DNA from: Gekko japonicus
Taxonomy: Eukaryota
Direction: 5' to 3'
DNA length: 64,000 nucleotides
Assembly (NCBI RefSeq): GCF_001447785.1
Contig: NW_015160838.1
Location: 1,635,097-1,699,096 of the forward strand
Numbering within the stretch: position 1 is the first letter of the stretch; each line of letters begins with the position of its first letter. The position numbers and the translations under genes were made by a program. Below the pieces are notes generated by a model that did not search any database, was not told where the DNA came from, and saw only the letters and a program-made list of their open reading frames with translations. This document shows, piece after piece, positions 5,308 to 51,750 of this stretch.

Positions 5308-5464
5308 CTAAGCTCATGTATAGTTGGGAGATTAAAGGTGGGGGGGGTGAGAAAAGGGAGAAAGCAAAAAGAACACTGTCAACTGATTGAGGAAATGTCA
5401 TTTAAGGGTGGATTAAAAACAAAATATATGCAACAACTGCATTTGAGGGGGTATTGTTTGCATT

Positions 5465-5688
5465 TGTGTGCGCGTGCGTGCCTGCCTGTGCCTGGAAGAC
5501 ATGGTGACCTCTGGTGACTCCTACTGAGGCATGGAGAACGTTCAGAGAAGTGGCTTGATAGCCTGCCTCTGCCTCCCGGCCCTGGTATTCTTTGGAGGTC
5601 TCCCATTCCAAATACCTACCAGGGTCAGCCCTGCTTAGCTTCTGAGATCTGATGAGATCGGGCTTGCCTGGACTATCCAGGTTAGGGC
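5465..5688 (-). mobile_element. 5S rRNA-derived SINE (tail type B)
   Basis: Same 5S-like head on the minus strand; CA/GC-rich tail. Confidence 0.85.
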
Positions 5689-6853
5689 TACAAGTGCATT
5701 TTTAAAGCCTTGGGCAATCCTGACTTTGACCTATATTGGCAAGCTATAAAAGTGTTTCCGTGATTTAAACAGCAGCAGCATAAAGCATTCTTCTCTAGTC
5801 TTCTCGTACTGGAGATACATCTCCACTGGAACTGCTTTCCATGGTCCAAGTCAGAGGTTTTTCCCATCCCTGCTTCTTAAGGTTCAGTCTTGTTCCAACC
5901 CCCCCCCCCCAAAAAACCTGGAGATTCTGGGGATCACCTGCAGCTGTGGCTCCTCCCAACTCCAACACTGCTGCAATGAAGTACGAAGTCCATCTTCTCA
6001 GAATTTGAATCTTACACTAGATGGGTATCTCTAAGCCAAAAAGGTGTAAATGGGCACCAGATTTAATGGACAAGCCATTGATGAGGTGCTGACCCCGTGC
6101 ATCAATAGGCATAGAAAACTGGATAACTATGCAGTGTTCCCCACCACCAGTACCACATGCTAGATTTCCCACTAACTATTAAACTAGATATTTTGGATTT
6201 ATGCTGATTCAGTCCTTTGGTGTAAATAGGGGACTGGTACAACTTGAATTCAAGAAATCCAATGTACACATCCCAGGACCTCAGGAATGGATTATGCTTG
6301 GTGTGGAGCAGTCCCTGGAAACCCCCCACCTTTGTAAATATACATATTAATGCATTCTGCAAAGCATAGGTTTGCAAAACACAAAACCCTCTTTCAATAA
6401 ATATTAGAGAAGGGGCATTCCCCCCCCACACACACACATATACTGGGTCAACCTGGACTTAGTAAACTGGGCTATTCTGCAAAAACAAAGAAACAAAACT
6501 AGCAAGGAGGGGGGTTTTTTAGGCCCGTTTCAGAATGACTTTGAAAGACAGTCACTAGGAAATGACAGAGACTTCCTCAAAGCCCCCTCAATTGTCCCCA
6601 ATTGCCCCCTTGAGTACTGTTTCTGTGACTGGGCAAGCAGTGACAGCTGAGCAAATGAAGCTCCCTCCCTCTCCTCTCCCTCCCAACCCCACCCTTTCTG
6701 TTTTCCTCCCTCTTTGTCTATACATCTTGGCTACTAGGTAGTCAGCACCTGAAATGTCTAGTGTGTCCTAAGAAACAGATCCAGACAAAGAGAGCTGTGT
6801 TTCTTGAAAACTTATGCTACAAGAAAGTTTGTTAGTCTTAAAAGGTGCTACTG

Positions 6854-6854
<1 letters not shown>

Positions 6855-6917
<63 letters not shown>
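6855..6917 (+). repeat. (TAT)n microsatellite, ~21 units
   Basis: Direct reading. Confidence 0.98.
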
Positions 6918-9670
6918 GGGAGAAGGGGCTGAAAACAAATGTTTAATTAAATAATGCCTGTGACTGGAATCTTTTATGATGTTGTTTAAAACGGCAGTTT
7001 AGGATTGGGGTCATGGTGGGGAGGGAGTGCTTAATCCTTTCCCCCTGTATTTTCCCCAGACCTCTTTCCCCCCCCCACAGGGGGAATATATAGGTACCAG
7101 AAAGATACCTGTATGTCTTCCCCCATCAACCTGGTCATAATCTGACAACCAGTGGGAGATTGGTATGAGGAAATTCACTGCCAGAGGATGTAGTGATGGC
7201 CACAGGAATAAGCAGCTTTAAAAGGGGATTAGATAGATTCATGAAGGATAAGTCTATCAATTACTATTAGCTGTGGTGGTTGAGGGGAACCTCCATATTC
7301 AGAGGCTCTAAACCTCTGAATTCCAGAGCCAAAAGGCAACATCAGGGGAAGGCCTTGGCCTCTATGACCTGTAGGTGGCTGTCCAGAGGAACTGGTTGGC
7401 CACTGTGTGAGACAGGATGCTGGACTAGGGGGACTATTGGTCTGATCTTTTTGGCTGCAGTCACACTGAAAGCTTGACGCAATCTGCAGCCACCCTGAAG
7501 TGGCTTCACCATGAGCTCAGCCCATGGTTGATTGTTCAGATTATGGTGGCATCTTTTTTTTGTCTGTCACCCATGCGCATAAGCATGTATCACAAACTCC
7601 AGCTCCTTTTTGACAGCTCCACAATCCCTCTTTGAAGTACACCGGCCCCTCTTAGCCTCCTTCCCTTTGGCTCTCGTCTTTGGACTATATGAGAGGGGTA
7701 AAGTGCAGATTTACATGAGAGTAGTAATTATAATGTTAGTTGGCACATGATACTTTTGAAAATTTATAAACAAGAGATTACAAAGGGAGCTGGGAACCAT
7801 GGAAGTACAGAGGGTGAACTTGAACCTCTCTCTCTCTCACACACACACATGATCAAACCTGCCCCACAAGTTTGTTGTGAGGATAAAAAAGGAGACGGAG
7901 AACACATGGTACCCCAAACTCCTTGGAGGACAGATGGCATTAAAAAGGCGACAGAGGTCAATAAAAATTATGAATTGGGTACACAAAATGGATAGGCCGG
8001 AAACTGTCTTTCTTGTTCACAACACTAGAATCCAGGATCATTCTATTAAAATGATGGGCTGGAGATTCATAGTAAATAGGGGGGGAAATATGCAGCCATA
8101 GATGCAGCCTATACAGGCCACCACAAGATGTGGCAGGGACCCGAAACTGAAAAAGGTTTTTTAAAAAAAAGGATTAGAAAAAGGCATAGTGGTTGTGTCT
8201 ATCAGTAGCTACAAGTCGTGCAAGTGAAACAGGACCTGCTGCACTTGAAGGCAGTATCCTCAGAATGCCAGCTGATGGAGACAAACATGCAACACATGCA
8301 AATACACAAACACACACGCAAGTGGTTGAGGGCTGTTGACATAACCACTGTATGTTTCATGGAAGCATCTGGCTAGCAAGTGTCTGACTAAATGGGGAAT
8401 TTCTGTAAGACATTCCAATAAAGAAGAGGTACTTTGAAGTATGTGTTTTCTTGAGAAATGAGAAAAATTCAGGTAAAGGGAATACCACCAAAGAACTAAC
8501 ACCTTGTGTTAAAGCCAAACCAATTCTTCCAAGAGCTACAGAATTTGACTACAAACCAGGTTATGCTGAATACTCCAAATTTTAAGTTGCTTTTTTAAAA
8601 AAGTGTCTCCTTTAATCACTAAAAACCAACCCTAGATTAATTTATACTGACAATTGGGTGTAATCTTCCATTGTGATCAAGTGAGTGAACACAGCCATTT
8701 TCACACTAGTGAAAGACTCGTTCTGCTGCTTTGTTTTAGTGGGACGTGTCTGTGTTGAGACGTATCTAATCCTTCAAGACAGAGGCAAAGAAGGTGATGA
8801 ATTATGAGTTGCCTCTGTTGTTCATTCCAAACATATCCTTACAACCTATGTTGGATTACTGAATGAGAATTGTGTGTTATCAGCAACTGGCCAAATGCCC
8901 TACGATCTCTCAGCAACAGGACATTTATGATCCTTATTAAACAAAACAGCCAGAAAGGGAAGAATTAGATGCCTTCCTAACAGAGAGTCTGTCACTGGAC
9001 AGCATGGCCTGAAAAGCAACATTTCCAAGAATGTATATGGCCTACAACCAGTGACCACAAGTCACAGTGGATACTTTAAACCAGGTTATGCAAAGAGATG
9101 CCTTTATAAATGTTTTAAGTCTGGTACCTATCAGTTTCATTGCTTAGCCCATGAGTGTTCAACACCATGTTTTGGATCCAAAGATACTCCTCTGTAAGCC
9201 ACCCAGAGTCTGTTTACAGGGTGGGCGGGGTATAAATATAAGTATAAATAAAAATAAATAATAAGAAGGCATTTCTCGTGCAAGGGAAGGAGGGTTCTGC
9301 GAATTCTCTTCCCTCCCCACCTACAGTGTCTTATGCCACAATGCCTGTTTCTTCTGGAAAGTCCACTGAACTTCAAGCGCTGCCTTCTGAGGAACTCAAA
9401 GAATTGCAGATGAAGGAGCAGGGGTAGGAAAGCCCCCATGCGCAAACAGAACTTCACGCATAGTTTTTTTGGGATCCAAGATCATGTGCATACACTGCAA
9501 GAATCCTACAGCTGACCAAGAATGGTTTGAGATCAATCACCCCATTCTCCCTTTCAAAATATGATTAAATTCAACATAATCAGAGAAGAGAAAACAGCAG
9601 TCAACAGGGACCTGTATCCATGAAGGAGTCAACTAGTTATCTGAATCCATTTAAAGTATAAGGACATAAG

Positions 9671-9909
9671 GCCCTGACCTGGACAGCCCAGGCAAGCCAG
9701 ATCTCATAAAATCTTGGAAGCTAATCAGGGTTGACTCCAGCAAGTACTTGGATGGGAGACCTCCTTGGAATAACAGCAGTCGGGAAGACAGGGGTAAGGA
9801 TTATTCAGCCACCTCTCAAAATATCCTCCAGGCCCCCAGTAGGGGTCAGTCACCAGAGGTGGCTATGACTTCCAGGTGCACGTGCGTGCACACAAACTTT
9901 TTAAAAAAA
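9671..9909 (+). mobile_element. 5S rRNA-derived SINE (tail type B)
   Basis: 5S-like head; TSD TAAGGACATAAG. Confidence 0.85.
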
Positions 9910-9956
9910 TAAGGACATAAGGAGACCCTGCTGACTGCTGAACTGGACCAGTGGTC

Positions 9957-10280
9957 TGTTATGTATTATGTTATGTGAATGAGCCTGAGCTTCAGTCACA
10001 ACCTCCATAGACTCTCAGTATCCTAAAATCGACAGCCTGATTGGCTGCCTTGTGCAATGGACCAATCAAGAAAGACTATGACTTTTGGCGGGAACAAAAT
10101 CTATTGGTCCTAAGTGCTCACTCATGATTGGACCTTACTGTTATAGGGGTGTGGTTTAGCCTGTTCCAAACTGTATATAAGTTGGGGTTGTTCTATGGCG
10201 TTGTGTGTGTTCTCTGTGCTCTGTTCTAATAAACTGAAATCACTGGTTAAGAGCGAGCTGCCTGATCTCGAGTTACAACA
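9957..10280 (+). mobile_element. Solo LTR, 324 bp, inserted in a CR1 fragment
   Basis: TGTT...AACA ends, 5-bp TSD TGGTC, CCAAT/ATTGG boxes, TATATAA 10174, AATAAA 10228. Confidence 0.88.
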
Positions 10281-10486
10281 TGGTCCCATCTAGTCCAGTG
10301 TATGGTTTCACATAGCAGCGAACTGCTATCCCTAGAGGGCCAAACAAACAGGGCATAGAGGCCAAGGCCTTTCCACACGGCTGCCTCCCAGAGATGGTAT
10401 TCAGAGGTTTGCTGCCTCTGGATATGAATGGTCACCACACACCAGTCACTTTACATATGCTATAAATGTAACATGTGCAAAATGCG

Positions 10487-11167
10487 GCATCCAGGCTCCT
10501 GATGGGTCTCTCTATACGAGATCACATCCAGCCTGTGCTGAAGGCACTGCACTGGCTGCCAATATCATAGTGGATTCATTTCAAGGTGCTGGTTCTGACC
10601 TTTAAAGCCCTATATGGCAGGGGGCCTGTTTACCTGAGGGACCACCTTTCCCCATATGTTCCCCAGAGAGCACTGAGGTCAGGGTCACAAAATCGCCTGA
10701 CTCTCCCTGGTCCGAAAGACATCAGATTGGCCACCACTAGAGCCAGGGCCTTCTCAGTGGTGGCTCCACTCTGGTGGAACGAGCTCCCAGAAGACATCAG
10801 GGCCCTGTGGGACTTTTTACAGTTCTGCAGGGCCTGTAAAATGGAGCTCTTCCACCATGCTTTCAATTAGGAGCCGCCACTGCTAAATGAGTCATCGGAA
10901 CTGAACGTGCTATGGTCCTTATGACACAACGCTGGATACTGCCTTCGGACCACTTTATAGGTTGCAACACTGGTTATTGCCTTCTCGTATTGGATTACAT
11001 CATAGGAACCACCATCTGTATGTACCAGCACTTTATGTAATTGTTGTTTATGTGAATTTTATTGCATATTATTGTTTTATTGTATTTTAATCTGTCTGTA
11101 CGCTGCCTTGAGACAGTTTGCCCGGCAAGGCAGGATACAAATTGAAAGTAATAAACAAATAAATAAA
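10487..11167 (+). mobile_element. L2 LINE 3' end
   Basis: LHWLP..FKVLVLTFKALYG..RAFSVVAPLWWNELP; (TAAA)n tail. Confidence 0.85.
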
Positions 11168-11178
11168 TGTGTGCAAAC

Positions 11179-11311
11179 CTATTGACGCCAGCCCTTCAGG
11201 TCTGCTTGAGAGCCTTATGATATCTCGGTCTCCCCTTAAAAGAAAAATCTCGTTTTCGGTACAAGACACAGACACAATATCACCAGACCCTTCCAAGCTG
11301 CCAATCAGAGC
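11179..11311 (-). CDS. TECPR2: TECPR2 exon 7
   Basis: 133 nt; ALIGSLEGSGDIVSVSCTENEIFLLRGDRDIIRLSSRPEGLASI; donor G|GTTTGC. Confidence 0.93.
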
Positions 11312-15717: not shown

Positions 15718-16327
15718 CTTTCCACCACCACAGGGAGAGGCAGTCAGGGAAGAAATCAAGCAATCGGCACTCACACAGAAGTGATTTTTACTTATATACA
15801 GGGTTCTCTGAATTCTGATCAAGTGTCTCCCCCCTCTCACAAAAGAAGGATAGATAACTATTTTCAACCCAGATAATGTAAGGGTATGCCAAAACCAAAC
15901 AATGAATCTGTAAGTCTGGCAGAAATTTATTCTGCTTCCGATTTTTTTTGCTCTGGAAACAAATATAGAGGGCTCTATTGGAAAGCAACACAGAGAGGAA
16001 AATATATGAATGGATACAGAAGTTTGAATTAGACTCAAGGATCATGGGATAATAGCCAAGAAGGGTAAGAGAGCAGCATGGGATATTAATGCCCTGCTCA
16101 TGACAAGCAGGATTTCAGATAAGCACACCTATCTCTCGTCAGAATAATTAAAGTAATAAAACGATCATACTTCAAATGATCTACTTAACAGCTTCAGAGA
16201 AAGGACGCTGAATGGAAAAAAATATTTTATGCAAAGCATTATGTTGAATGACTTCATTACCCAAACCCCATCTCTACAAATCTGAAACTAAATGGTATTT
16301 GTTTGCATCAAAATTTAATGGAGTTAC

Positions 16328-16485
16328 TTTTTCCTGGGCTGGGTTCCAACTTGCTTGACAGATTTCTCTTCTGTGTAAAACAGTAGACTTCGCTGTAGAG
16401 TGGAGACCAGCAACACTTTCTGGCTGTAATCTAGCTGCACAATTGAAGACGGCTCTTCCAAGACCAAACTGGAATTGCAACGACC
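16328..16485 (-). CDS. TECPR2: TECPR2 exon 5 (complete copy, downstream of the L1 in transcription order)
   Basis: 158 nt; GRCNSSLVLEEPSSIVQLDYSQKVLLVSTLQRSLLFYTEEKSVKQVGTQPRK; donor AA|GTAACT; frame fits exons 4 and 6. Confidence 0.95.
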
Positions 16486-16548
16486 CTGGAGAGACATAAC
16501 AGGGACACAGAACACCGTCGTTTCCCAAGTTAAGAACCTGACTATGCT
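16381..16548 (+). repeat. 168-bp direct repeat, left copy (target-site duplication)
   Basis: 167/168 identical to 18157-18324; single C/T difference at 16519 vs 18295. Confidence 0.97.
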
Positions 16549-18156
16549 GCGATGGCGGAGGCTCTCTCCTGAACGGGGGAGGCATTCCGCGCTCCAGGGG
16601 TGCTGGAGGGGTGTCACCTCAAGTGGCACCCCCAGGTGAGCCTCAGTGTGGGGCTCCAAGCCGGGGGCGCTTGAGGGGCGACCTCTTCCACGGCTTGAAG
16701 CCGGGGAATTGAGGCGCTCCTCCCTGCCCCATTCGGTCCACCCCCTGAGAGGCTCGGTTTTTACCGAGCATAGCTGAATGCCGATCGGGACAAGCAAGCG
16801 GGTCAGCGAATGAAGCATGATTAAAAGGAGTCTGTGATCAGACTGTCAAGGAACTGGAGAATGAGACGAGCGAAGAAGCTTTAAAAGTGAGTTCCGATCC
16901 CCCCCCCACCCTCAGCGGCGTCGGGAGGAATCCCAGACGTAAACAAACCGAACTGTGATTTAAAGAGACGGGGAGGGGGAGAAGACAATTAATCACTCAA
17001 GCGTGCCAGAGACTTAGCTGTTTTTTGCGGATAAACCAGCACTTGCTGAAGAAGTGTGAAAAAGCACTCTTTAGTATAAACAAAGCGGAAAATGGCCGGC
17101 TTCCGAGGGAGAGGAGTGAGATGGGGGCGTGGTTCTCAAAGTCCGAGAGTGGAGGAAGGAGATGTTTTCTCCACACTAACAGAGCTGCTTCGGCCCATTC
17201 ATGAAAGACTCGATGGCCTTAACCAATTGATTGCTGCCTCAAACCAGAGCATGGCAAAACAGCAACAGCAGATCACCGAGCTTGTGAAAAAATCGATCCA
17301 AACTGATGAAAAACTTAAAGAGACCACACATGATGCTAAAAAGCTGAAGAAAAGAGTTGGTCTGATGGAACAAAAGCAGGATCTACACGAAAGGAAGCTA
17401 TTGAACCTACAAATGGACAAAGCGAATAAAACCCTTAGATTCCAAGGGGTGGCTGAGACGACAGGAGAAATTTTGAAAGATGTGGCAGCTGAGCTAATCG
17501 CTCTATCGCTCGGCATTGCAACGGCTGAAGCGCATGCAGAGATAGAAGTGACATATCGTTCTTACTCTAAATATATTAAGCAAAACAAACTGCCGGGCGA
17601 GATCGTGGTCAAATTTCTCCGACGACAGACAAGAGATGATATTCTCAAAGCAACAGCAGACAAACCCCTGCAAATGGGATCAGCAAGTATCAGGGTCCTT
17701 AAGGACGTTCCATTTGAGGTTCGACAGAAAAGAAAAGCGTACAAAGAACTCATCTCAACACTTCAGATCAACCAAATTCAATACTCCTGGCTTTTTCCAG
17801 AAGGGGTCCAATTCAAATATAGAGACAAAAGAGAAAAAATCGACTCGGTGTTAAAAGCAGAAGAATGGTTGAAGCAATTCTTCGGACAGAAAGAGGAAGA
17901 GCAGCAAGACGGAGGAGGCCAGGCAGCTGACCTGGAAGAGACGGACAGAGACCTACTTGGAGCAGAAGGAGGCACGGCCAGAGAAGCATATGACTTGCGG
18001 CTAAGAGTTGCCAAATAGCACTTATGAACTAAAAAGACTTATGGATGAGCTGGAAGAAGTCTATGTGCACACTGAGAAGAAATTAGATATACAACAAAAT
18101 GGACTAACTAATCTCCTAAATTCCTTGACTTAATGAAAGCATTAATCTTTATAACT
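16549..18156 (+). mobile_element. L1-clade element: CpG-rich 5'UTR + intact ORF1 + ~140 nt, no ORF2 or poly(A)
   Basis: Starts GCGATGGCGG (YY1-like); bounded by a 168-bp direct repeat; carries ORF1. Confidence 0.88.
17092..18018 (+). CDS. L1 ORF1p-like RNA-binding protein, 308 aa, intact
   Basis: Coiled coil, then TLRFQGVAE..PGEIVVKF..RDDILK (RRM-like), then IRVLKDVP..RQKRKAY..YSWLFP (ORF1p C-terminal domain pattern). Confidence 0.88.
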   Translation: MAGFRGRGVRWGRGSQSPRVEEGDVFSTLTELLRPIHERLDGLNQLIAASNQSMAKQQQQITELVKKSIQTDEKLKETTHDAKKLKKRVGLMEQKQDLHERKLLNLQMDKANKTLRFQGVAETTGEILKDVAAELIALSLGIATAEAHAEIEVTYRSYSKYIKQNKLPGEIVVKFLRRQTRDDILKATADKPLQMGSASIRVLKDVPFEVRQKRKAYKELISTLQINQIQYSWLFPEGVQFKYRDKREKIDSVLKAEEWLKQFFGQKEEEQQDGGGQAADLEETDRDLLGAEGGTAREAYDLRLRVAK

Positions 18157-18324
18157 CAGTAGACTTCGCTGTAGAGTGGAGACCAGCAACACTTTCTGGC
18201 TGTAATCTAGCTGCACAATTGAAGACGGCTCTTCCAAGACCAAACTGGAATTGCAACGACCCTGGAGAGACATAACAGGGACACAGAACACCGTTGTTTC
18301 CCAAGTTAAGAACCTGACTATGCT
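18157..18324 (-). pseudogene. TECPR2: 168-bp direct repeat, right copy: intron end + acceptor + first 105 nt of TECPR2 exon 5 (18261-18157)
   Basis: Same sequence as 16381-16548; reading continues into antisense L1 and stops after SYKD. Confidence 0.93.
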
Positions 18325-20349: not shown

Positions 20350-21042
20350 GTCTTATAGGAGAGGCTAAAGGCCAAAGGCCCATCCAGTCCAACACTCTGT
20401 ATCACACAGTGGCCAGAAATACCAGTGCCATCAGGAGGTCCACCAGTGGGGCCAGGACATTAGAAGCCCTCCCACTGTTGACCCCCCCCCCCAAGCACCA
20501 AGAAGACAGAGCATCACTTGCCCCAGAGTCCCTATCTATACCTTGTGGCTAATAGCCACTGATGGACCTCTGCTCCATATGCTTATCTAATTCCCTTTTG
20601 AAGCCGTCCATGCTTGTAGCCGCCACCACTTCCTGTGGCAGTGAATTCCAAGTGTTAATCACTCTTTGGGTGAAAGAAGTACTTCCTTTTATCCGTTCTA
20701 ACCCGACCGCTCAGCAATTTCATGGTGTGCTCACGAGTTCTTGTATTGTGAGAAAGGGAGAAAAGTACCTCTTTCTCTACCTGCACTTTCCCATGCATAA
20801 TTTTATAAACCTCGATCATGTCACCCCTCAGTCGTCGTTTCTCCAAGCTAAAGAGCCCTAAGCGCCTTGACCTTTCCTCATAGGGAAAGTGTTCCGACCC
20901 TTTTATCATTCGAGTTGCCCTTTTCTGCACTTTTTCCAAAGCTATAATATCCTTTTTAAGGAGTGGTGACCAGAATTGCACACAGTATTCCAAATGAGGT
21001 TGCACCATTGATTTATATAGGGACATTATGATATTGGCTGAT
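20350..21042 (-). mobile_element. CR1 LINE 3' end
   Basis: LYKSMVQPHLEYCVQFWSP..LEKVQKRATRMIKG..LEKRRLRGDMIEVYKI. Confidence 0.93.
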
Positions 21043-21354
21043 CTTATACCGCCTTTCCACCCGATCAGGGTCCACATGGTGGTGAACGTAAAATACATTA
21101 AAACAATTAAAATACAGTTAAAATTATAAAATAATTATATTAAAAACACATAAGGAACACAAGAAGGAGGGCCACTATTATTGTACAGGCCAGAAAAAAC
21201 AAAAAGATGAGATGCCAACAGGCCAGAACATTGTACGATTGCTCATATTAAAAAGGGCTCACAGAAATGAAAGGCCCAGCCTTCCTTGTCTCCAGTACTG
21301 CCTTCAATTTTGATGCAGAAACTACCTGCCCCCTGATCTGGAGCAACTCCTTAC

Positions 21355-37101: not shown

Positions 37102-37225
37102 NNNNNNNNNNNNNNNNNNNNNNNNNNNNNNNNNNNNNNNNNNNNNNNNNNNNNNNNNNNNNNNNNNNNNNNNNNNNNNNNNNNNNNNNNNNNNNNNNNN
37201 NNNNNNNNNNNNNNNNNNNNNNNNN
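37102..37225. other. Assembly gap (124 N)
   Basis: Run of N. Confidence 1.
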
Positions 37226-42410: not shown

Positions 42411-43343
42411 AAGCTGTCCATGCTTGTAGCTGCCACGTCTTCCTGCACCACTGAGAAGTGACTCACAAAAGCTCCTACCCTGCCACAAATTCTGTTAGTC
42501 TTTAAGGTGCTACTGGACTGTTGCTCTTTTCTACTAGATATAAGCTGTAATAATAATAAAAAAGCCCACTAAGGTGCCGGCACACAATTGTTGGCCTGTG
42601 CTGGGATTTGATTCCCCACCACCGGCAATATGTTTTTCCTTGGCTCAATATGTTTAGCCAATCCCCTCTTGAAGCTGTCTGCTTCTAGCCACCACCTCTT
42701 CCTGCAGCAGTGAATCCCACATATTACTGTTTGGGCGAATAAGTACTTCCTTTTATCTGTTCTAAGCCTATTGCTCACTGACTTCATTGAGTGACCACGA
42801 GTTCTTATTTTGTGCAAAAGTGAGAGAAGTACATGATTTTGTAAATTTCTATCATGTCTATCAAGAGCCCTAAAAGCTGTCCATGCTTGTAGCTGCCACT
42901 TCTTCCTGCACCACTGAGTGAGAAGTGACTCACAAAAGCTCCTACCCTGCCACAAATTCTGTTAGTCTTTAAGGCGCTACTGGACTGTTGCTCTTTTCTA
43001 CTAGATATAAGCTGTAATAATAATAAAAAAGCCCACCAAGGTGCCGGCACACAATTGTTGGCCTGCAGCTGGGATTTGATCCCCCTCCACCCCCGGCCAT
43101 ATGTTTTCCCTTGGATCAATATGTTTAGCCAATCCCCTCTTGAAGCTGTCTGTGCTTCTAGCCACCACCTCTTCCTGCGGCAGTGAATCCCACATATTAC
43201 TGTTTGGGCGAATAAGTACTTCCTTTTATTTGTTCTAAGCCTATTGCTCACTGACTTCATTGAGCGACCACGAGTTCTTATATTGTGGGAAAGAGAGAGT
43301 ACATGATTTTGTACATTTCTATCATGTCTATCAAGAGCCCTAA
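42411..43343 (+). repeat. Tandem duplication (463 + 470 bp)
   Basis: AAGCTGTCCATGC...TCAAGAGCCCTAA at 42411-42873 and 42874-43343, with scattered differences. Confidence 0.92.
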
Positions 43344-48499: not shown

Positions 48500-49170
48500 T
48501 CACAAAAAGAGCCCTGCTGGATCAGTGGTACATCTAGTCCAGCATCCTGTCTCACATAGTGGCCAACCTGGAGATTTAACAACAGGACATAGAAGCTTCC
48601 CAATGTTGCCTCCTGGCACTGAGATTCAGAGGCTTACTGCTTCTGAACATGGCGGTTCCCTCTACCCACCATGGCTAGTAGCCACTCACAGATCTATCCT
48701 CCATGAATCTGTCTAATCCCCTTTTAAAGCTATCTATGCCTGCAGCTATCACTATATCCTCTGGCAGCGAATTCCACATTTTAATCACTCGCTGTGTAAA
48801 GAAGTATTTTGCCTGTCCTATATCTACTGCCCATCAGCTTCACTAAAAGCCCAGAAGTTCTAGTATTTGGGGAGAGAGGGAAAAGTTCTTCGGCAACCGT
48901 CTCCACTCCATGCACAACTTTATAAGCCTCTATCATGTCACCTGTTAGTAATTTCTTTTCTAAAATATAAAGTCCCAGAATCTTCGGCCTTTCATCACAT
49001 GGAAAGCACTCCAACCTCCTAATCATCTTGGTTGGCCTCTCCTGTACTTTCTGCAGCTCTGTGATGTCCTGTGGAGATGCAGTGACCAGAACTACACACA
49101 GAATTCCAAATGAGAGAGACCACACCATAGATCTATACAGAGCCATTATAATATTAGCTGTTTTATTTTC
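48500..49170 (-). mobile_element. CR1 LINE 3' end
   Basis: ELQKVQERPTKMIRRLE..LEKKLLTGDMIEAYK; smaller CR1 3' pieces at ~7160-7450, 7985-8290, 41325-41485, 58130-58450, 59110-59525. Confidence 0.85.
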
Positions 49171-50145: not shown

Positions 50146-50271
50146 GCCTACACCTTGGAAATCTTGCTGGTCTCTAAGGTGCTACTGTACTCAAATCTCG
50201 CTCCGTGAATAATTCACAATGCTGGGATTGTGTCCTCAAATTTACTAAGGGGACAAAATAAACCTTTTTAC

Positions 50272-51153
50272 CTGTTGCCCATTTTCTGTGGCATCTGCCT
50301 TTTCATTTGTTACAGTACCCTGTGGGGGTACAAGAGTCCGATGGCTACTTTCACCGTTTGCTTTCCCAGTGTCTTCCAGCAATGTCACACTACAAAGCCG
50401 ATTCACAGGGGAAGATGGTGAAGATTCTTGTGGCCCGTGGTCAGGATTCAATCTGTAATGTCGTGCTAATCCTCCTTTTCCTATGTAGGATTTTTCACAA
50501 GTCTGACACTTGAACAATTTTGGCCTCAAGTCATAGGTCAAGGGACCAAACAAGGGCATTTCCTTCTCCTTGCCCTCTTCATCCTCTTCTACGCTGAGCT
50601 CAGAATAGTCATCAGAATCAGACTGATGACAGTCCGCCAAGTCTTCAGTTTTAATAAATTTGTAATCCTTAGCTTTATATTTGGGAGGACGTGAAATCCG
50701 CCCAGATCGGGTTTTCACCTTCAGGTTCTTTTTAAGTTTTTGTTCTCTTTGTTTCTTCTCACAGTTTACGATAGGGTTTGCTGGATTTTTTGAATCCACA
50801 GTACCACATGGAGTTTGTGTAAAGGACTTGTTTCTATGCTCATTTAATGTTTGGTGTGTCATTATCTTATCTGCAGATACTTGTCCATGGGAATGTAAAG
50901 GTCTCTGCAGAAGCAGCTGAATTGCTGGCCCAGAGGAGTTGTGTAAGAAAAACTGATGTGATCCAGTCACTGTAAGAGGCTCTATCCTAATGATCTGAGG
51001 ATTAACAACATTGAGTCCCAAAATCTTTGCATTCTTCTCAACTGGCTGAGCTGTGGTTACATTCCGGGGTTGATTTGTGGCAAAAAATACTGCTGGTCTT
51101 TCATTTTCTTTTGTCTGATCAGGCTGCACTGGGACACACATGGTTTCCAAATG
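50272..51153 (-). CDS. ZNF839: ZNF839 exon 2 (contains the single C2H2 finger)
   Basis: 882 nt; KLKKNLKVKTRSGRISRPPKYKAKDYKFIKTEDLAD..SDSDDYSEL..FKCQTCEKSYIGKGGLARHYRLNPDH. Confidence 0.96.
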
Positions 51154-51750
51154 CTTTAAGAAATAAAGATTATTTAAGCATAAGATTACATAGACTTCTC
51201 TCAAACTCTTGAACATTAGAGACCTACAACACCATATTGCTTTCCAAACAGATCTGAACTAGTATTTAAATTGATCCTTTTTAATTTAATCTAGATCTCC
51301 TATACACAGAAAAACATTACTCACAGTAATGTTATTATAAGGACATCTTGCTATTAATGCAAAATATTCTAGCTCTTCTAGTAGGAATTAGAAAAGAGCA
51401 ATAGTCCAGTAGCACCTTCAAGGCTGAAAGCTCATACCCTGCCACAAACTTTGTTGTTTCGTAAGATGCTGCGAGACTCTTGCTCTCTTCTCCTGCTACA
51501 AACAGATTAACACAGCTACCCATCTTGATCTAGCAGGAATTAAAGGCCAGGAAGAAGAGTAAAAAAAAAAAAGTCCCTAAAGGAGGATGACTTTCTGCAA
51601 TGCAAGTGAAGGAGACTTGTCTCATTCTGCTCTTTTTACCTGCCACAGGAAGTGACTGAAGTAAAGCCAAAGCAGTGGCACTCACTCCCACAAGACACAA
51701 CATTCCAGAGTCTTTAACGCTGCAGTCCACTTGACCCCCTCCCTCCCTGC

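Follow-up and report, generated by a model that had tools for sequence, protein, structure and literature searches.

An L1-type insertion between two 168-bp copies of a splice acceptor and exon start in the gecko TECPR2 gene

In a 64-kb stretch of the Gekko japonicus genome (64,000 nucleotides of contig NW_015160838.1, hereafter the window), the neurodegeneration-related autophagy gene TECPR2 carries an L1-type insert that is bounded on both sides by the same 168 bp, and each copy of these 168 bp spans the end of intron 4 and the beginning of exon 5. Because the duplicated block holds a putative branch point, a pyrimidine tract, an AG and the start of the exon, the copy that lies downstream in the orientation of the gene would form a complete exon together with the 53 nt that were left untouched, and the insert and the upstream half-exon would then lie within a longer intron 4. 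The layout of the DNA thus allows a rescue of the exon. We interpret the structure as a single retrotransposition-type event carried out by L1 machinery, in which staggered nicks at T4-A motifs led to the 168-bp duplication, an internally primed and tailless complementary DNA (cDNA) was installed between the copies, and a complete exon was kept; we assign this interpretation a probability of roughly 0.6. The structure is read here from the assembled sequence, and the features on which the argument draws are collected in Table 1.

Table 1. Coordinates of the duplication, its edge motifs, the TECPR2 exons around it and the parts of the insert (positions are those of the window; an arrow denotes reading on the minus strand).
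Feature	Position	Strand	Description
Left repeat copy	16381..16548		Downstream copy in gene orientation, joined to the remaining exon; 63 nt of intron (16486-16548) plus exon nt 1-105
Right repeat copy	18157..18324		Upstream decoy in gene orientation; intron end with AG (18262-18324) plus exon nt 1-105 (18261->18157)
Sole difference between copies	16519 C / 18295 T		CpG to TpG on the plus strand; 34 nt upstream of the acceptor
TTTTAC	16380-16375	-	Just outside the left duplication edge, within the exon; candidate endonuclease site
TTTTAA	18324-18329	+	Starts at the last base of the right copy, in the intron; perfect L1 endonuclease consensus, candidate site of the other nick
Upstream exon ("exon 4")	21486->21355	-	132 nt; donor CAG/GTAAGG
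Affected exon ("exon 5", fourth coding exon)	16485->16328	-	158 nt; phase 0 entry, ends with two bases of a split codon; donor GT 16327-16326
Downstream exon ("exon 6")	14604->14292	-	First base completes the split codon
Insert	16549..18156	+	1,608 bp, antisense to TECPR2
Insert leader	16549-17091		543 bp, GC/CpG-rich
Insert ORF1	17092-18018	+	308 aa, the single intact open reading frame of the insert
Insert 3′ remainder	18019-18156		138 bp, A/T-rich

The duplication is long and nearly perfect. Compared base by base, the two copies match at 167 of 168 positions, and BLAST between them returns an expectation value (E) of 1e-83, at which chance is ruled out as a concern. An earlier note on this DNA, made from the letters alone, had described two 168-bp copies around a 1.6-kb insert, each copy with the last 63 nt of intron 4 and the first 105 nt of exon 5, and this description is correct in both respects: the left copy contains, in its intronic part, a branch-point-like TCTTAAC at 16535-16529 (about 45 nt upstream of the exon), a pyrimidine tract and an acceptor AG at 16487-16486. 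Repeat detection reports a wider pair (16370-16548 and 18146-18324, spaced by 1,776 bp) that would make the duplication 179 bp long; the 11 bases immediately to the left of the clean repeat are identical at only 8 of 11 positions, and this wider extent was rejected since 3 mismatches fall in those 11 bases and 1 in the other 168. Across the whole 64-kb window, BLAST finds no third copy of the repeat and no second copy of the insert. Read in the orientation of the gene, the order of parts is intron 4, the right copy (18324->18157), the antisense insert, the left copy (16548->16381), exon nucleotides 106-158 and the donor, and one strand break falls within the coding exon, between its nucleotides 105 and 106. 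The half-exon in the right copy encodes 35 aa that match the Pfam domain Beta-prop_HPS5 (E 1.3e-4); it runs into the antisense insert and reaches a stop after four more codons. Duplication and insertion are most simply explained, on this architecture, as one event.

Judged by its coding sequence, the host gene is the TECPR2 orthologue. Exons were searched singly, by reference, and not as a joined spliced model. Exons 4, 5 and 6 are mutually in frame on the minus strand and match consecutive positions of Beta-prop_HPS5 (106-136, 149-196 and 197-297), the affected exon with E 3.3e-10. The affected exon encodes a 52-aa peptide with 100% identity to residues 161-212 of Heteronotia binoei TECPR2, exon 6 is 100% identical to residues 214-317 of Gekko japonicus TECPR2, and the large TECPR2 exon is 99.7% identical to the same protein. 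Over the inferred exon junctions the annotated G. japonicus protein reads DFDQ/GRCN...PRK/N/TGK (junctions marked by slashes), which is in exact agreement with the exons as we place them. A HMMER search with exon 6 retrieves proteins named tectonin beta-propeller repeat-containing protein 2 from NCBI and UniRef; in the PDB no TECPR2 or HPS5 propeller was detectable with this query, and in the protein atlas it met generic bacterial beta-propellers only, below a useful score. There are ten collinear tblastn blocks for TECPR2 in the window, and the other TECPR2 exons there are all open and highly conserved. The label exon 5 is correct if the gene has a non-coding first exon, as in human. As the affected exon is 158 nt long, skipping it would shift the reading frame.

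The insert runs antisense to the gene and contains one intact open reading frame (ORF). In a phmmer search against the PDB, residues 69-241 of its product match human L1 ORF1p (2ykp, E 6.9e-5) over the end of the coiled coil, the RRM and the CTD, and mouse L1 ORF1p is also matched (2ldy, E 1.9e-3). Among 5.8 billion clustered proteins this ORF has a single homologue, P0001, a protein of 305 aa that is 58% identical to it and comes from a 1,540-bp Logan contig, about a half-L1 in size; a profile built from the two sequences returns the same PDB matches. Public protein sets contain very little of this ORF1 lineage. From these matches, the ORF is best classed as an L1-type ORF1 of the coiled-coil/RRM/CTD type. 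The earlier note had called the whole insert an L1, which is right as to the type of its ORF1 and wrong as to its completeness, because what is present is an ORF1-only, tailless fragment that lacks ORF2, a poly(A) signal and an A-run. Surveyed vertebrate L1s, those of lizard included, all end in AATAAA and a poly(A) tail (PMC5381506); measured against this norm, an insert with neither argues against ordinary poly(A)-primed target-primed reverse transcription (TPRT). By its sequence features, then, the insert is apparently the tailless 5′ portion of an L1-type RNA, and its source could be an ORF1-only half-L1 or, equally, the 5′ third of a full-length L1 RNA. We also considered that ORF2 and a tail were lost after insertion and rejected this, as the deletion would have had to stop exactly at the edge of the duplication.

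The edges of the duplication bear on how the insert arrived. A T4-A motif is found at both of them, each on the strand whose 3′ end points into the insert. The minus-strand TTTTAC that the earlier note placed within the exon is present, and at the opposite edge the plus strand offers TTTTAA (Table 1). The joint chance of T4-A at both exact positions, estimated from window frequencies in what is a post-hoc test, is about 1e-5. As sequence evidence, these edge motifs favor L1-endonuclease-type nicks on both strands. The orientation of ORF1 implies that the cDNA is attached to the 3′ end of the minus strand, at the exonic left edge, and that the 5′ end of the element was joined to the 3′ end of the plus strand, at the intronic right edge. 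The simple form of the opposite arrangement, an insert of reversed orientation primed from the plus-strand TTTT/AA, was rejected on the grounds that ORF1 is sense on the plus strand and no T-run follows the left copy.

In the mechanism that we propose, the two strands of TECPR2 would have been nicked about 168-176 bp apart, each beside a T4-A motif, the minus strand at TTTTAC in the exon and the plus strand at TTTTAA in the intron, 63-66 nt upstream of the exon. The long 3′ overhangs would both have been copied, which would yield the 168-bp target-site duplication, and the cDNA between the copies would represent three parts of an L1-type RNA: its 5′ leader, ORF1 and a further 138 nt. Priming would have taken place internally instead of on a poly(A) tail, which leaves the insert tailless, and the cDNA would have been copied to the apparent 5′ end of the RNA. 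Two orders of nicking can be envisaged. The exon nick may have come first, with internal priming on the RNA at that site, followed by a cut of the plus strand at the distant TTTT/AA; or the intronic TTTT/AA may have been nicked first and the exon second, with only an internally primed twin-priming arm surviving. The two orders fit equally well. Under the second, the premise that a duplication of normal size would have destroyed the exon fails, and the earlier note's starting point, a would-be null allele, is therefore not established: the perfect TTTT/AA in the intron means that the first cut could have been intronic.

A number of observations weigh against this interpretation. The right junction reads ...ataact/cagtag with no AAAA, and the left copy adjoins the first bases of the element directly, so that the T/A run of a TTTT/A cut is retained at neither junction and some trimming must be assumed: either T-tails were trimmed before priming or joining, or the cuts lay just 5′ of the runs. 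For the same reason the earlier note's claim of a cut within the coding exon at TTTT/AC is borne out only in part; one break does fall within the exon, but the junction sequence misfits such a cut unless a T-tail was trimmed. The insert has no ORF2, and the 138 bp that follow ORF1 are closed or short in all three frames, with no endonuclease-like start; AATAAA and ATTAAA are absent after position 17425 (the last 700 bp of the insert), and there is no A-run at its 3′ end (18156). Pfam does not recognize ORF1 and returns only coiled-coil noise, whether the cut-off is E 0.01 or E 10, and the two-sequence alignment gives an AlphaFold model too poor for use (predicted local distance difference test score 47.6). 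Since the window holds no further copy with which the ends could be compared, the insert is no more than putatively 5′-complete and internally primed. The 168-bp duplication itself is outside the canonical TPRT range of about 7-20 bp.

The insertion looks young, as indicated by the single difference in 168 sites, the intact ORF1 and a high CpG observed/expected ratio (0.67-0.72 in the insert vs 0.22-0.35 in the flanks), which agrees with the earlier note's view of a recent event. With a substitution rate of 1e-9 per site per year, one difference per 168 sites corresponds to a point estimate of about 3 million years, with a Poisson interval of about 0.1-17 million years; the sole difference falls on a CpG, a site that mutates fast, and this favors the younger part of the interval. 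Gene conversion between the copies would make the event seem younger than it really is.

Two alternatives concern the origin of the structure. In one, it is an artefact of assembly: the animal would carry an ordinary insertion or none, and the same 168 bp would have been placed on both sides of it, for example by mixing of haplotypes. The assembly does contain at least one run of Ns nearby (37102-37225), but neither junction shows Ns or a quality break, both are clean and coincide with T4-A motifs, which is not expected from an assembler, and the copies differ at one base, which excludes a double use of one set of reads unless a heterozygous single-nucleotide polymorphism lies there; we consider an artefact highly improbable. 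In the other, repair-mediated capture, the overhangs of a staggered break or of a collapsed fork would have been filled in and a fragment of L1 cDNA or DNA caught there, as an endonuclease-independent or templated insertion. This is unlikely in our estimation, although it accommodates two features of the insert, namely that the T-runs were not kept at the junctions and that the insert is tailless and lacks an L1 3′ end, which is typical of endonuclease-independent insertions (PMC1920257). Against it stand the T4-A motifs at both edges on the correct strands and an insert that reaches the apparent 5′ end of the element and is not an arbitrary fragment. Moreover, endonuclease-independent L1 insertions usually come without a target duplication and with deletions, and here there is a duplication of 168 bp.

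A third alternative accepts the structure and doubts the rescue. The decoy acceptor would compete with the true one, the half-exon would be spliced to cryptic donors in the insert, a premature stop would result, and the assembly would have captured a recent, partly or wholly defective allele whose rarity or heterozygous state lets it be tolerated. Over positions -33 to +105 the two acceptors do not differ, and the spliceosome encounters the decoy before the true one, as it comes first in transcript order. On a rough position matrix, which gives no more than an indication, the donor of the affected exon (AAA/GTAACT, 16326-16331 region, minus strand) scores a weak 5.1, compared with 11.5 and 12.6 for the donors of the neighboring exons and with 7.0 and 6.8 for the GT sites at 17931 and 17956 of the antisense insert. 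Measured from the decoy acceptor, these two sites are 330 and 305 nt away, and their use would make a decoy exon of 305-330 nt. With its weak donor, the affected exon leans more on its exon-definition context than its neighbors do. Failure of rescue is also consistent with the early stop in the decoy frame, four codons into the insert, and with an insertion so young that selection may not yet have acted. On the other side, the downstream copy is part of a normal-sized exon with its native donor, which favors exon definition there, the gene strand of the insert contains no AATAAA or ATTAAA, the gene's remaining exons within the window are all open and show high conservation, and the matrix behind the donor comparison is a rough one. 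We regard non-rescue as possible but doubtful and expect that splicing to the downstream copy is probably normal, although some mis-splicing with nonsense-mediated decay is plausible given these sites. TECPR2 disease in humans is recessive, and in a heterozygote a young allele could persist even if its function were reduced or lost.

Several further features of the window were recorded. A 164-aa, ATG-started ORF on the minus strand (16324-16818) begins in the antisense leader of the insert, crosses the duplicated 63 nt of intron and stays in frame over the full length of the TECPR2 exon as far as the donor; should the leader act as an antisense promoter, the ORF could give an N-terminally replaced TECPR2 transcript. 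Farther along the gene, residues 362-523 of TECPR2 from Heteronotia, Paroedura and Eublepharis have no tblastn match in the window (region 5308-11180, minus strand), small blocks at 10365-10276 and 8770-8651 are matched instead by the annotated G. japonicus TECPR2, a shorter protein of 1,295 aa, and Gekko TECPR2 models are without about 160 aa of the disordered middle region. Upstream of TECPR2 and on the same strand, a 323-aa ORF (50245-51216, minus strand) combines Pfam DUF4764 (E 3e-98) with a C2H2 finger, as in a ZNF839-type gene, which is presumably the same neighborhood as in human. Three minus-strand ORFs (20655-21098, 42569-43260 and 48781-49146) show the C-terminal motif pattern of a CR1-type reverse transcriptase (LGLFSLEKRRLRGDMIEVYK-like), and one of them sits in TECPR2 intron 4, 250 bp from exon 4. 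The run of Ns mentioned above is 124 bases long and breaks a 198-aa ORF on the minus strand.

The case is a natural example of a known but rare outcome in a fortunate position. If the structure is real, it provides a natural, germline-type counterpart to what has mainly been a cell-culture observation, an L1 duplication long enough to copy functional sequence, and it illustrates that a long duplication can cancel damage to a coding exon by rebuilding its acceptor and the exon itself. Left behind with it would be a decoy half-exon and, 63 nt upstream of a conserved TECPR2 exon, an antisense L1 promoter region. The insertion would be reversible, since the 168-bp repeats can recombine and so return the allele to its original state. 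By itself this is a single-locus curiosity, and it would gain weight if duplications on the scale of a nucleosome were common in the gecko genome. We can imagine, while thinking it decidedly unlikely, that gecko L1 machinery recurrently places its second nick about one chromatosome (165-170 bp) away, at the next accessible T4-A, to give a class of nucleosome-length duplications. Were there such a class, it could make harmless intronic insertions of exon hits near splice sites, and these insertions could afterwards be removed cleanly when the repeats recombine.

How the gecko locus relates to known systems depends on which of its parts is compared. Full-length and 5′-inverted human L1 insertions normally have duplications of 10-18 bp (PMC2912911; PMC11702581). 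Twin priming, in which synthesis starts internally on the L1 RNA from the reciprocal 3′ end and proceeds toward the 5′ end of that RNA, is an established L1 outcome (PMC11702581), and a sense-oriented, tailless arm beside a target copy is how the right junction would look if the plus-strand TTTT/AA was nicked first; classical products of twin priming, however, also keep a poly(A)-primed arm and have 12-18-bp duplications, whereas here there is one arm and a stagger of 168 bp. HAL1 and other half-L1, ORF1-only retroposons resemble the insert in that they join a 5′ leader to an L1-type ORF1 and have no reverse transcriptase; the gecko insert differs as a 1,608-bp sequence without a tail. A splice site supplied by the duplication that an insertion makes is known from introner elements, where a 4-8-bp target duplication contributes the splice site and an insertion into coding sequence is spliced out (bioRxiv 10.1101/2022.06.06.494994). 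There too the insert can be removed from the mRNA, but introners are mostly DNA transposons of protists and fungi in which this is a systematic property of the family, whereas the gecko case is a one-off, brought about by an unusually long duplication, in which an existing intron was lengthened and none was created.

Close parallels come from cultured cells. Among engineered L1 insertions in HeLa cells, up to about 10% have duplications of more than 100 bp, and in cells deficient in nucleotide excision repair the target duplications reach 5.3 kb and tailless inserts are frequent (PMC5223499). The authors of that work pointed out that long duplications could copy exons and that recombination between the copies could remove the insert, and very long L1 target duplications in cultured human cells are among the earlier results they cite (Gilbert 2002/2005 and Symer 2002, as cited in PMC5223499). 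These insertions share with the gecko locus a duplication of more than 100 bp around an L1-derived insert that is in some cases tailless. They differ in being products of engineered human L1s, whereas the gecko locus presents a natural, germline-type event with an ORF1-only fragment and a duplicated, complete splice acceptor.

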